Below the pieces are notes generated by a model, which saw only the letters and a list, made by a program, of their open reading frames with translations, ran no database searches and had not been told where the DNA came from. DNA of 64,000 bases, taken from NCBI GenBank assembly GCA_964234715.1, contig OZ174281.1; one strand, given 5' to 3'. This document shows positions 14,328-59,406 of the stretch, piece after piece. Both the position numbers and the translations under genes were made by a program. Numbering within the stretch: position 1 is the stretch's first letter; each line of letters begins with the position of its first letter. Origin of the DNA: Podarcis melisellensis (taxonomy: Eukaryota).

Positions 14328-14767
14328 TTTTTCCCAGTAGTGATGTATGGAAGTGAGAGCTGGACCATCAAGAAGGCTGATCCCCGAAGAATTGATGCTT
14401 ATGAATTATGGTGCTGGAGGAGACTCTTGAGAGTCCCATGGACTGCAAGTAGATCAAACATATCCATTCTTAAGGAAATCAGCCCTGAGTGCTCACTGGA
14501 AGGACAGATTGTGAAGCTGAGACTCCAATACTTTGGCCACCTCATGAGAAGACAAGACTCCCTGGAAAACACCCTGATGTTGGGAAAGATGGAGGGCACA
14601 AGGAGAAGGGGACGACAGAGGATGAGATGGTTGAACGGTGTTCTCGAAGCTACAAACATGAGTCTGACCAAACTGCGGGAGGCAGTGGAAGACAGGAGTG
14701 CCTGGCGTGCTCTGGCCCATGGGGTCACAAAGAGTCAGACACGACTAAACGACTAAACAACAACAAA
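14328..14767 (+). mobile_element. BovB (RTE clade) LINE, 5'-truncated 3' end
   Basis: ORF 14340-14756 MYGSESWTIKKADPRRIDAYELWCWRRLLRVPW...HGVTKSQTRLND; (CAA)n tail; TSD aatccccaa at 14319-14327 and 14768-14776. Confidence 0.95.
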
Positions 14768-20438: not shown

Positions 20439-20844
20439 AGAAGGCTCAGAAGGCTGATAGCCAAAGAATTGATGCTTTTGAATTATGGCGCTGGAGGAGA
20501 CTCTTGAGAGTCCCATGGACTGCAAGAAGATCAAACCTCTCCATTCTTAAGGAAATCAGCCCTGAGTGCTCACTGGAAGGACAAATCCTGAAGCTGAGGC
20601 TCCAATACTTGGGCCACCTCATGAGAAGAGAAGACTCCCTGGAAAAGACCCTGATGTTGGGAAAGATGGAAGGCACAAGGAGAAGGGGACAACATAGGAC
20701 GAGATGGTTGGACAGTGTTCTCGAAGCTACCAGCATGAGTTTGACCAAACTGCGGGAGGCAGTGGAAGACAGGAGTGCCTGGCGTGCTCTGGTCCATGGG
20801 GTCACGAAGAGTCGGACACGACTAAACGACTAAACAACAACAAC
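20439..20844 (+). mobile_element. BovB LINE 3' end
   Basis: ORF RVPWTARRSNLSILKEISPECSLEG...HGVTKSRTRLND; 12-bp TSD atgctttggctt at 20427-20438 and 20845-20856. Confidence 0.95.
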
Positions 20845-21197: not shown

Positions 21198-21332
21198 TAG
21201 AATCATAGAGTTGGAAGGGACCACAAATATCATCTAGTCCAACCACCTGCAATGCAGGAATATTTTGCTCAGTGTGGGGCTCAAACCCACAACCCTGAGA
21301 TTAAGAGTCTCATGGTGTACCAACTGAGCTAT
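21198..21332 (-). mobile_element. tRNA-Lys-derived SINE with CR1-type tail
   Basis: Minus strand TAGCTCAGTTGG...GAGACTCTTAATCTCAGGGTTGTGGGTTTGAGCCCCAC followed by GGTCCCTTCCAACTCTATGATTCTA; copy at 51674-51808. Confidence 0.8.
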
Positions 21333-25354: not shown

Positions 25355-26419
25355 TGTCAGGCTTCAGGAAATCAGCTTCCTCTCTCCATGGCAGGAGATA
25401 AGCAGAACAAAGGAAAAGGAGTCATCTTACCAGTTAGAAGCTTTAATAATCACAGCGAGAGAACAAAGAACATGCCTAGAAATGGCAGTGCTCCCAATTA
25501 AGAATCCCACCCCCTTGTTGTTGTTTAGTCATTTAGTCGTATCCGACTCTTCGTGACCCCATGGACCAGAGCACGCCAGGCACTCCTGTCTTCCACTGCC
25601 TCCCACAGTTTGGTCAGACTCTTGTTTGTAGCTTCGAGAACACCGTCCAACCATCTCGTTCTCAGTTGTCCCCTTCTCCTTGTGGCCTCCATCTTTGCCA
25701 ACATCAGGGTCTTTTCCAGGGAGTCTTCTCTTCTCATGAGGTGGCCAAAGTATTGGAGTCTCAGCTTCAGGATCTGTCCTTCCAGTGAGCACTCAGGGCT
25801 GATTTCCTTCAGAATGGATCGGTTTGATCTTCTTGCAGTTCATGGGACTCTCAAGAGTCTCCTCCAGCACCATAATTCAAAAGCATCAATTCTTTGGCGA
25901 TCAGCCTTCTTTATGCTCCAGCTCTCGCTTCCATACATCACTACTGGGAAAACCATGGCTTTAACTATACAGACCTTTGTTGGCAAGGTGATGTCTCTGC
26001 TTTTTAACATACTGTCTTCCCCACCCCCTTACGTCCCTATTAATCCATATCACTGCTACGTTTTGGAATCTGAGCCTGTCCCCTCTGTGCTTTGTGTGCT
26101 TTCTGTTCTGCCACTTTCTCAGCTCTTATTGACTTTGGGGAGAGCGGATGAATGCTTTCCAGAGACAGTGAATCTGTTAACCTTCTCTCTCCTAGTGTTT
26201 CTTCTCCTAGCTGCTCCCCATCCAGTACTTCCCAGCTTCTGCCTTCTGAACGATGCCCCTCTGCAAACCACTGTTCCAAATCTATACTGTCCTCCTGCTC
26301 CTGGGAAGATTGAGGATCCAGATCTGGAGCGGGGGGGGGGGAGGCTCCCACCATTCCTCCTTAGTGCAGCGGTCCCTGCACTAAGGGACCTGCATTCCTC
26401 CTCAGCACGGTCCCTGACA
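25355..26419 (-). mobile_element. Solo LTR (Gypsy-like), ~550 bp once the nested BovB is removed
   Basis: TGTCAGG...CCTGACA termini; 5-bp TSD ttgag at 25350-25354 and 26420-26424; ATTAAA on the minus strand near 25442. Confidence 0.85.
25517..26019 (-). mobile_element. BovB LINE 3' end nested in the solo LTR
   Basis: Minus-strand KSRDITLPTKV...HGVTKSRIRLND; 11-bp TSD cccaccccctt at 25506-25516 and 26020-26030. Confidence 0.95.
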
Positions 26420-40405: not shown

Positions 40406-41406
40406 GTCAATGCTAACAAAGACGCCTCCTTTGACACTTCAAACCTGGGACAGTCACAATGGTAAAACTTTACTGCCCACTAGAGATTTGATTCCATTCG
40501 CATTTAAAAGCAGACATACAAAATTCAGATTTTATGTGAAAAAAAGCACAGCCGTTCTTCAAAATGTGCACTTACCTGAATTTTGCAGAGCCATTCTCCA
40601 GCTAGGTAACATGGACAAAAACGCACAGAATACGGTAGAATGTGCACATAAATGCATCAATTACTAACAAATAATAAACACACACAGATGCATTTTATTA
40701 GGAAAAATTGCTTTGCTAAAATATGTACATCAGGCCAAACTGCACACACAAAAATGTCCAGTCGAAAGTGGAGAAGGCAAGGGTGATACAGCTGTGACAG
40801 AGGAACGACAGGTGTGCTCTCTGAAAAAGTTTGATTATTGAATACTGAAGGCACTGAAATGCTAATGAATTTTCATGAGGACTTTCTTTTTTAAAAAAAA
40901 AAATCACAAACTGATGTGAAAATGCAGAGAACTGAATTGATCCTTTGCATGTTTACTTGGAGTGAAGTCTGATTGTGTTAATTGAGTCTTGCTCCCATGG
41001 ATTGCAGCCTAAATGTGCTATTTTTAACTAAAATCAGATGCATTGTGTAAGAATGGCGCTCTTGGCTTCTTAAAAAGACAACAGTGTATTTTCAAGTGAA
41101 ACTTTCATCACCAGGGGCAAGATGTGGGGGGAAACATTGCTCCTAAGAAGGCATATTTAAAACTAGTGGAAAAGACACAATGGGGGGATATGGATGAAAT
41201 TGACAGGAACAGCCTTTGTGTTTACCTCAGGAACAGCTTTCTTAGTATGGCAAAGTTGGCAAGAACGGGTGAGGTAGCAATGAGGTTGAAACTGCACGAG
41301 AACACTGGTGGAGCCAGTTAAGTACTGTTGCCAACGCATCCATGCAGCCCCAACCTCACACAGAGAACAGCTTTAGGGTTTTCTTTTCCCCCAGAGCCTG
41401 AGTGAT

Positions 41407-42470
41407 GATTTATTCATTGAATGGCTATACCACCCTTCATCCAAAGATCACAGGGTGGCTCACAACACAAAAATACAAAATGAGAAAGCCACTTCCGAGC
41501 TCGAGAGGAGGGGGCGTTGCGGGCCATCCCCTTTCCCACGCGCGCGGGGGCGGAGTTAGCCCCCGCGAGAAGAGGGAATCCCCAGGCGTGCCCGAGACCC
41601 AGCCCACCAATCGGCGAGCTGGGGAGGTGTGGCCTGGCCCCATTTAAGGCCAGGGCGCCCGGGGACCGCCCTCTTTGCCCCCGTTCCGGCTGCCCGGTTT
41701 TTGAACGTGATCGCTGCCGTGCTGCCTTCCCAGAGCTGAAATCACTTACAGGATCTCGGTCCTGGCTGAATCACTGTTGTGCCTAAAAAGGGAAGTGGCG
41801 CTCGCACGCTCGATCGGCTTTAAATTTTGAAAGGGGGTAATTGTTATGCAAATGAAGGGGGGAGGAAGCGCCATCACCTTCCCCCAATGAAAAGGGGTAG
41901 TCCGGTAGAGAACTCCGGGGGGCGTTGCCTTGTCCGAAACCTAGGGAGGTAAGGGCCTCCGGCACGCCCCCGAACGGTGACACCCGTGGGATCCTAGTTG
42001 GCGTACTTCAACAGGACTCCCACGGCTTGTGGATAACCCCTCCCGGTCCCCATGCCGGGTAGTCGATAGGAGCCAATGCCTAAGGCCAGTACCTTCCAAT
42101 TCCTGTAATCAATAAAGTTGTGGCCTTTTTATGCCCATTAACCTTAAATAATGTGTCCTGTGCCTTCATTTCTTGCGGGGAGGGGTTTCGCCATGCAACA
42201 CAAAACATATGACAAAACAAAATAAACTAATAACTCGCCTCCCACAGACACATTTAAAAGGCCATAGAGTGTTAATCAGCCAAAGTCCTGGTCACAGAGA
42301 AATGTTTCGCCTAACTATATGCAAAGAAGGTGCCAGGTGAGCCTCCTTGGAGAGAGCATTCCACAAACCAGGAGCCACCATAGAAAAGGCCCTTTCTCAT
42401 GTTGCCACCCTCTGGACCTCTCATGAAGAGCCTCAGATGATTACTGCAGGATCTGGTTTGCTTCATATGG
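41407..42470 (-). mobile_element. L2-type LINE 3' end split by the Ngaro-like repeat
   Basis: atacaaaatgagaa|cacaaaa rejoins across 41487-42198; downstream gcattccacaa...gaaaaggccc is the antisense of the RAFSVVAPxLWNxL motif. Confidence 0.7.
41487..42198 (+). mobile_element. CpG-rich DIRS/Ngaro-like solo terminal repeat, copy 1
   Basis: LTR-like order CCAAT, TATA-like TTTAAG, octamer 41846, AATAAA 42111, but no TG...CA ends and no TSD; block-wise homologous to 57996-58655. Ngaro assignment is inferred. Confidence 0.7.
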
Positions 42471-51620: not shown

Positions 51621-51673
51621 TCCTTATCTTTTGCTAATTTGTCCACTCCTCTTTTAAAGCCATCCAAGCTACT

Positions 51674-51808
51674 GTAGCTCAGTCAGTAGAGCATGAGACT
51701 CTTAATCTCATGGTTGTGGGTTTGAGCCCCACATTGGCCAAAAGATTCTGCATTGCAGAGGGTTGGACTAGATGAACTCTCATGGTCTCTTCCAACTCTA
51801 TGATTCTA
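51674..51808 (+). mobile_element. tRNA-Lys-derived SINE with CR1-type tail
   Basis: GTAGCTCAGTCAGTAGAGCATGAGACTCTTAATCTCATGGTTGTGGGTTTGAGCCCCAC plus TTCCAACTCTATGATTCTA. Confidence 0.82.
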
Positions 51809-57888: not shown

Positions 57889-57995
57889 CAGTCAAATATT
57901 ATCTTTGGCTCATCCACACAGAGGGCCAGTCATAAAGACTGATTGGCTGTGCTCACTTAAAGTTCCATCCAGCAAATCTATAACATTCTGCAGAA

Positions 57996-58655
57996 TGCCC
58001 CTTCCGATTATCAGGAGGAGGGGGGGTTGCGGGCTCCCGACCCCGCCTACACTCCCGTGGGGCTGGCTCCAGTCTCGCGGGACGCGGGGATTCCCTTAAT
58101 TAGCATAACCCCGCAGCACCAGCCAATCGGCTGGCGACGGGGGCGGGCCTTCAAGAGGCCACTTAAGGTCAGGGCAGCCCTTGGCTCGCCCCTTTTCTCC
58201 TTTGCAGCCAGCGAGGTTTGGTCGCTCCTCCGCTCGCTACCGTCCTCTGCGTCGCCTTTTCTCCGTTCGCCTTTGGCCGGGGTATTGTTATGCAAATGAG
58301 GATGGGGGGGAGGAACGCCATCACCTCCCCCAATGCTTGAAGGGTAGTTCGTTAAAGGACTCCGAGGGGCGACGCCTCGTCCGAAACCTACGGAGGCTAG
58401 GGCCTAAAGCGCGCCCCCGAGCGGTAACCCCTCGGGGAGCGCCTAGGGATATGCATCTCGGGATAGCTCCCCCTGTCGGTGTTTAACCCTTCCCGGTTAG
58501 ACCGGATAGTCGGTTAGGGGCCAATGCCTAAAGCCAATACCTCTCTTACCTGTAATCAATAAAGTTGTGGCCATTTTTCGCCCATTAACCCAAATACTTG
58601 TGTCCAGTGTCTTTATTTGCCTCACTTGTGTGGGGGGGAGGGTATAGCCGCGCAA
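57996..58655 (+). mobile_element. CpG-rich DIRS/Ngaro-like solo terminal repeat, copy 2
   Basis: CCAAT, CTTAAG, octamer 58290, AATAAA 58558; ends GCCGCGCAA; no TSD; homologous to 41487-42198. Confidence 0.7.
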
Positions 58656-59406
58656 CTCTTTTCGTGGCTAGCCATCCCAGCATAAATGCAAATCAGCCAT
58701 GGCTATGTGGCCAGTCAGGTGTTGTGTTAGAGCTGGTTAGGGTTCTGCCCTGTTAATCCTACTCAAGACAAGCAGAACTTCCTTTAAGGTATTGCTTCTC
58801 TGAACTGTCACGCTGGCCAGTTACGTGCTGGCGAGCTCAGTATCCCACTTTGTTTGCTTCCCTTGTTCTAATAATACACTCACATAATCGCAAACATCTG
58901 TATACAATGATGCAGATGTGTGTAATTATAGAAGCATTTAAAGATTACATGAGATTTCTGATGCTGAAGCCTTCCAAGCTTTCTGGTTGTTCTTTTTAAT
59001 TTATTTATTTTTGGTAAATGTTGAAAACATGTTTTTCGTTAGGGGGGATTTTTCTTCTTCTTCCATTCCAGTTATGATGACCAATATAGTCAGAAATGCA
59101 GCCTTGGGTCTCTCTGCTCTAGAAATGGCTGCCCAGTAAAGAACTGCTGGCCCTGTTTAGTTTTTGCTCTGTTTTAAAGCCTCTTCCTTTAACATTCTTG
59201 TGGGAGTCCTCAAAATTCATTTCAGGGGAGGCAAATAAAAACAAAATTAAAGTCTTCGGTTGCAAGGTAGAGATATGCAGGGTATTACACATATCAGTCA
59301 ACTCTAGCCCTCTCTATGAATATTCTGAAAAGTTACCATCCCCTGCTCACATTTCCTTTGCCATGAATAACAGCATAGAGGATTTTAGGGGGCCATTTTA
59401 GCTAAG

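Follow-up and report, generated by a model that had tools for sequence, protein, structure and literature searches.

Two diverged copies of a putative Ngaro-type A+B repeat unit in Podarcis melisellensis share a conserved B module

The window analyzed here, a stretch of 64,000 nucleotides from Podarcis melisellensis, contains two decayed copies of a putative Ngaro-type element. The two stretches for which a conserved RNA fold had been predicted appear to be B repeats that belong to two A+B units, both old and diverged, of a putative lizard tyrosine-recombinase retrotransposon of the Ngaro type. The B repeat is a real, conserved and selectively maintained module of this putative lizard Ngaro family. 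Its hairpins a, c, e and f, together with a further hairpin that carries a sequence motif, are plausible when taken individually; the whole 290-nt architecture, including its long-range stem b, remains a prediction. A selected structured RNA of ~290 nt, the central claim of the original prediction, is not established, as two copies cannot show selection on RNA shape.

Both units are complete copies of one discrete repeat, the limits of homology being identical in the two. Copy A is a non-coding A+B unit of 713 nt (41487-42199), whose homology with copy B runs from GCC(A/C)CTTCCGA to GCAAC, and copy B spans 660 nt (57997-58656), with an A part at ~57997-58278 and a B block at 58279-58618; all features described below lie on the plus strand unless noted. 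The B block thus makes up the 3' half of each of these 0.66-0.71 kb non-coding units. No third copy of the unit was found within the 64-kb window, either by blastn or by a profile search using nhmmer.

The insertion edges of copy A were fixed by empty-site joints in contigs. On both sides (41400-41486 and ~42224-42300) it is flanked by a SINE-like repeat of very high abundance, whose contig depth is up to 300,000, and many contigs join 41486 directly to 42200-42250, representing the empty form of this host repeat; copy A has therefore inserted into the A-rich middle of a SINE-like repeat. Other, uninterrupted copies of the host repeat display variable CAAAA-rich letters between both sides. No target-site duplication could be read in the flanks of copy A or copy B, so that integration without such a duplication, one of the features by which Ngaro elements are recognized, is shared by both copies.

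The ends of the units carry nested inverted repeats, in which GGGGAGGG, GCC and GCAAC are opposed to GTTGC, GGC and CCCC, with an inner CTTCC..GGAGG. In copy A the 3' terminal arm (GGGGAGGGG..GCC..GCAAC, 42175-42199) is inverted relative to the 5' arm (41487-41545). A single hairpin is obtained from the ends only when these are joined (42160-42199 to 41487-41545 in copy A, 58615-58656 to 57997-58055 in copy B); the joined sequence then reads GGGGAGGG..GCC..GCAAC followed across the joint by CTTCC..GGAGG..GTTGC..GGC..CCCC in both copies, and it folds into a nested hairpin of -16.0 and -22.8 kcal/mol, respectively, using DNA parameters. This inverted-repeat B-A junction is a candidate recombinase site of the expected kind.

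The assignment to Ngaro leans on these end features, namely the shared ends, the lack of a target-site duplication and the nested hairpin at the joined ends, and we regard it as putative. The published Ngaro layout is A1-ORFs-B1-A2-B2 (PMC9210276). Split direct repeats of the A1...B1-A2-B2 type were absent here, where single A-B units have no second A or B nearby, which would suit either a solo remnant or an element of the A-B type but is not the full Ngaro layout. Comparison of 79 ORFs of at least 95 aa with Pfam revealed no reverse transcriptase/RNase H or tyrosine recombinase ORF in the window, and no ORF of the unit had a Pfam family match. With no such genes linked to them, the copies are solo or non-autonomous and could belong to Ngaro by descent only; each unit is either a non-autonomous A-B element or a solo remnant left when A1 and A2 recombined.

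Other identities were considered for the units and discarded. A solo LTR of an LTR retrotransposon or endogenous retrovirus was rejected because the termini are not TG...CA (GCC(A/C)CTTCCGA...GCAAC) and there is no duplication of 4-6 bp. A coding role was also put aside: both copies share a frame that remains open across ~40 codons, but the residues it encodes have diverged strongly, a stop is present in copy A and Pfam gives no match. A string TGGCG in hairpin e of copy A, taken as a possible tRNA primer-binding site, is missing from copy B. Word-based protein searches with the incidental ORFs of the repeat, on both strands, returned no match, and neither of its two most conserved strings had an exact match in metagenome or viral contigs.

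The window holds further repeats. Only two matches reached the Rfam gathering score, both tRNA-like (21266-21329 on the minus strand and 51668-51739 on the plus strand, 44-47 bits) and 88% complementary to each other; these are probably the heads of tRNA-derived SINEs rather than tRNA genes. Within 12 kb there are three copies of a ~400-nt repeat (14329-14766, 20448-20843 and 25515-25952), one of them inverted relative to the other two, with 92-94% identity, and several further SINE-like families recur across the window.

The two halves of the unit are conserved to very different degrees. The A parts align over 41483-41700 and 57992-58219 with 64% identity, and that of copy A (41487-41833) is poorly conserved except for two islands. 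These are CCAATCGGC (41607-41615) and, 36-39 nt beyond it, TTTAAGGCCAGGGC (41643-41656), the latter with the form (T/C)TTAAGG(C/T)CAGGGC; the islands, with their CCAAT and TTTAAGG, have a promoter-like geometry and may act as a promoter. A middle stretch of 134 nt in copy A and 60 nt in copy B, located between the A and B alignments, cannot be aligned. The B blocks, on the other hand, show 76% identity over ~340 nt by blastn (41834-42171 against 58279-58618), and the B block of copy A (41834-42174), which contains the stretch 41840-42125 of the original prediction, is a conserved high-copy module.

This difference is also seen in copy number. Contigs of four public runs were mapped to 41400-42300, among them DNA contigs from two lizard species. 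In these DNA contigs depth was 10-500 over 41524-41833 in the A part, and over 41834-42174 it was 4,000-100,000 in one organism and 80,000-880,000 in the other, with a sharp rise at 41834 and a drop after 42174 in both. The B block is hence 10-1000x more abundant than the 5' half in lizard DNA contigs, and the jump in depth at 41834 means that a B block of at least 80% identity is common to far more copies than the A half. B is a module common to many families with differing A parts. The stretch 41839-42180 is also covered by contigs from runs presumed to be RNA; these runs were available in contig form only and may include DNA.

The B block opens with an invariant 16-mer, continues with the helices described below and ends with an invariant 24-mer that includes AATAAA, a U-run and a GU-rich TGTGTCC(T/A)GTG. 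The 16-mer contains the octamer ATGCAAAT (41846-41853), a candidate DNA-level motif. In copy A the AATAAA (42111-42116) lies in the 24-mer (repeat family D17) and is closed by the pairing of GCCA (42085-88) with TGGC (42121-24), with the GU-rich TGTGTCCTGTGCC (42153-42165) downstream; in copy B the AATAAA is located at 58558-58563. Together, AATAAA, U-run and GU-rich element make up what appears to be a canonical vertebrate poly(A) signal, whose use by the element we infer from its sequence. An RNA ending at this signal would miss the last ~60 nt of the element. Split repeats are thought to restore a 3' end lost in this manner. The U-run, shortly before the likely cleavage site, could pair with the poly(A) tail.

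Invariant stretches of B include, besides the octamer, the core CGCCATCA (41869-41876) and GCCAATG (42072-42078), and these invariant motifs may have a regulatory role at the DNA level. GCCAAT is located 38 nt upstream of AATAAA, a spacing equal to that between CCAAT and TTTAAGG in the A part. The depth of the whole unit peaks at 42113-42143, and the 60 nt around AATAAA (CCTGTAATCAATAAAGTTGTGGCC and the U-run, 42082-42143) are ~10x deeper in contigs than the rest of B, so this piece is either kept by many more families or part of another repeat.

The original prediction had also placed the fold in a Ngaro-like repeat, between a TATA-like box and a poly(A) signal. This setting was supported, with promoter-like motifs on one side and AATAAA with a GU-rich element on the other, while the suggestion of a ribozyme found no support. 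Neither copy had a family match in Rfam, at the gathering score or at E up to 10; with self-cleaving ribozymes included and E up to 10, both copies gave noise only (at most 16 bits against thresholds of 46-96).

By direct reading, helices a, b, c, e, f and g are found in both copies where they had been placed. Hairpin a (41857-41885) is formed by GGGGGGAGG and CCTTCCCCC around a conserved loop with CGCCATCA, and has a pairing probability of 0.98 in copy A and 0.46 in copy B; its stem is indeed present, but the only change in it is a slip in run length and not a real covariation. Stem b joins AGGGGT (41893-41898) to ACCCCT (42036-42041), with a probability of 0.97 in copy A and 0.01 in copy B. 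The predicted exchange of a G-C pair in copy A for A-U in copy B holds, and at the pair 41894:42040 the family displays G.U in the majority of members, A-U as in copy B, and G-C in copy A. Nearly all other copies have T at 42040, and one contig has A, a mismatch which breaks the stem.

Next to stem b, and able to coexist with it, is the motif hairpin AGUYC/GGACU. Copy A retains a degenerate form of it (AGTCC GGTAGA GAACT, 41899-41914), and the family consensus restores AGTCC/GGACT; position 41911 (A>G) sets copy A apart from nearly all other copies, and position 41908 (G>A) from many of them. In copy B the hairpin is intact (58346-58361, pairing probability 0.97), and at the tip of GG-U-AGUUC/GGACU-CC lies the motif GGGT-N4-CGTTAAAGG (58342-58358), which is exact there, with 13/13 specified bases, 17 nt in all and zero mismatches.

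Domain c (41916-41972) is a G/C-rich bulged stem around the conserved GTCCGAAACCTA, a loop that is the same in both copies, as had been noted. Its outer stem is present, with a probability of 0.97 in copy A and 0.07 in copy B; the inner pairing of GCCUU with GAGGU, as originally drawn, reaches only 0.01 in both copies. RNAalifold pairs this inner part as GCC:GGC and GUCC:GGGC, with CCU:AGG, and finds one double change from U-A to C-G (41926:41964), the remaining differences falling mostly in loops.

Hairpin e (41984-42025) is long and irregular, with a probability of 0.99 in copy A and 0.08 in copy B. The claim that it is replaced by a different sequence in the second copy was not sustained: when the copies are aligned by MAFFT, which takes no account of structure, their GGGA:TCCC cores prove to be one helix that differs by one swap from U-A to G-C and is extended outward in copy A and inward in copy B. 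Partial data from two other contigs show a longer G-run matched by a longer C-run in this stem (41987 +G with 42018 +C; 41991 A>G with 42018 +C); one of these two is the contig with A at 42040. Hairpin f (CCCGG/CCGGG, 42042-42059) has an invariant stem and, as predicted, different loops, that of copy B being 3 nt shorter; its loop positions 42047, 42049, 42050 and 42052 vary among copies while the stem stays constant. Hairpin g (TAGG/CCTA, 42067-42082) has the loop (A/G)GCCAATG, with a CCAAT motif, and its invariant stem is uninformative on covariation. When the fold is corrected in line with these results, stem b would close a junction with the motif hairpin, domain c, a small GNRA hairpin and hairpin e.

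We then compared the fold with chance. Against dinucleotide shuffles the stability of the single sequences gave z values of -1.58 and -1.48. The minimum-energy fold of copy A contains the predicted helices, with probabilities of 0.77-0.99, whereas in copy B these have probabilities of 0.01-0.46, the ensemble favouring another fold, and enforcing them costs 6 kcal/mol; this penalty is within prediction error, yet it gives the fold no independent support. When the fold of copy A was used to predict pairs and these were tested on copy B, 68 of the 91 could still be formed, compared with 64.3 +/- 3.1 expected when the differences of copy B were scattered at random (P = 0.16). The RNAalifold consensus of the two copies has 67 pairs, including 7 in which both bases are changed (5.3 +/- 2.0 in scattered-difference alignments, P about 0.3), and among these 7 double changes one results from a G-run that slipped in the alignment and two come from a 2-bp helix. 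Compensatory changes, on which the original prediction relied, therefore do not exceed in number what chance would give between two sequences so diverged.

The energy of the consensus behaved differently, as it was -77 kcal/mol against -63 +/- 6 kcal/mol in the null (P 0.010-0.015), which indicates a tendency of the differences to stay out of mutually complementary segments or to preserve them. For the plus strand the z value of this energy was -2.0 to -2.3, and for the minus strand -3.3 to -3.7; since the reverse complement gives the stronger test, the RNA-sense strand is not specifically the one that carries the pairing signal. Paired positions were not depleted of variation in other copies, with 8 of the 21 variable sites listed falling in them, as read from per-site tables without linkage, in which other copies were traced only in part by contigs of unique depth.

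With roughly even confidence, we propose that B is conserved for cis-acting duties at the 3' end of the element RNA, that is, 3'-end formation and recognition or priming by the reverse transcriptase, with its loops displayed on hairpins. The element RNA would end inside B, making B the 3' terminal region where reverse transcription must begin; B would then be kept for 3'-end formation, for recognition or priming by the Ngaro reverse transcriptase, and for packaging, and the conserved loops CGCCAUCA, GUUAAA, GUCCGAAACCUA and GCCAAUG would be presented on hairpins. Non-coding A-B elements would be mobilised in trans because they retain the B module, in the way that SINEs borrow LINE 3' tails, and these duties of B would also explain the success of gene-less A-B units. 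A more specific form of this proposal, in which B of lacertid Ngaro elements encodes a modular 3' terminal RNA of ~290 nt, with a four-way domain closed by stem b and flanked by a, f, g and the stem-closed AAUAAA, serving as a platform for the reverse transcriptase and possibly as a self-primer, we consider quite improbable. In favor of structure we counted a consensus fold that beats the scatter null, the fixed stem and varying loop of f and the co-lengthening runs of stem e; against it, compensated pairs at chance level, a z of only -1.5 and a minus-strand signal at least as strong.

Two other explanations have to be weighed. B could be conserved at the level of DNA or cDNA, for protein-binding motifs (the octamer ATGCAAAT, the CGCCAT core, GCCAAT, and AATAAA with the GU-rich element) and for processing signals, with its inverted repeats acting in the single-stranded minus cDNA, in second-strand priming and end joining, or as recombinase sites. 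The invariant blocks are indeed recognisable DNA motifs, the element termini are inverted repeats and it is the minus strand that gives the stronger signal for the consensus fold (z -3.3 to -3.7 vs -2.0 to -2.3); moreover DIRS-1, whose reverse transcriptase acts in trans, replicates via a linear, single-stranded cDNA (PMC7192593). Nevertheless, factor binding is putative, a genomic Ngaro has B downstream of its genes and none upstream of A1, which makes an enhancer role awkward, and the G.U found at one pair of stem b in most family members allows pairing only on the plus strand; we hold conservation for reasons at this level to be rather unlikely.

It is about equally doubtful, in our opinion, that there is no selected structure whatsoever, the stems being typical of G+C-rich sequence with G-runs and C-runs and their matching changes due to chance. 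B would then seem to be conserved for its poly(A) signal and a few short motifs, or by exchange of modules among families, and a handful of matching changes is expected between copies that differ at a quarter of their sites. The z of about -1.5 against dinucleotide shuffles agrees with this, as do the retained pairs (P = 0.16) and double changes (P about 0.3); besides, the predicted fold is disfavoured in copy B, and the stems were picked after inspection of both copies. Such a reading accounts less well for a consensus energy that beats the scatter null (P 0.01-0.03), and for the differences in domain c and hairpin f, which fall mostly in loops.

Returning to the proposal of cis-acting duties at the RNA 3' end, comparison with known systems offers several parallels. 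With the split direct repeats of Ngaro (order DIRS) the units share a non-coding A/B pair, the lack of a target-site duplication, the inverted-repeat character of the B-A junction, a lizard as host, in which Ngaro elements are noted, and a poly(A) signal in B; they differ in standing alone, gene-less and with no B1-A2-B2. No description of RNA structure in Ngaro repeats was found in full-text literature searches. LINEs and their SINEs share 3' tail stem-loops that are recognised by the LINE reverse transcriptase, as in eel UnaL2/UnaSINE1. Here too a conserved 3' terminal module is kept by non-coding hitch-hikers, recognition by a reverse transcriptase being our proposal; but the LINE/SINE tail is one short hairpin used in target-primed reverse transcription, whereas the present candidate has ~290 nt and several stems and belongs to another class of elements, integrated by a tyrosine recombinase.

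The R-region of retroviral LTRs, with TAR and the poly(A) hairpin, likewise carries RNA structure in a terminal repeat, and an AAUAAA in a loop closed by GCCA:UGGC is predicted here as well; this helix is invariant and so provides no covariation information. Unlike a retroviral LTR, the unit has no TG..CA ends, target-site duplication or adjacent primer-binding site. A further parallel is DIRS-1, for which the primer of reverse transcription is still unknown, as for the DIRS order (PMC7192593), and a 3' hairpin of whose mRNA has been proposed to be that primer (as cited in PMC7192593). DIRS-1 is placed in the same order as the present units and shares with them the unsolved priming step and a hairpin close to the RNA 3' terminus; it differs in showing no sequence similarity, and in having inverted repeats and an internal complementary region instead of split direct repeats.

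The apparent compensatory changes in the window do not exceed chance, and a lizard family with thousands of copies would permit a strong covariation test. If true, a modular 3' RNA would explain the high copy number of gene-less A-B elements, and it would provide a first handle on how reverse transcription starts in tyrosine-recombinase retrotransposons; should autonomous Ngaro elements share a conserved, structured 3' module with their gene-less derivatives, priming would naturally be sought there.
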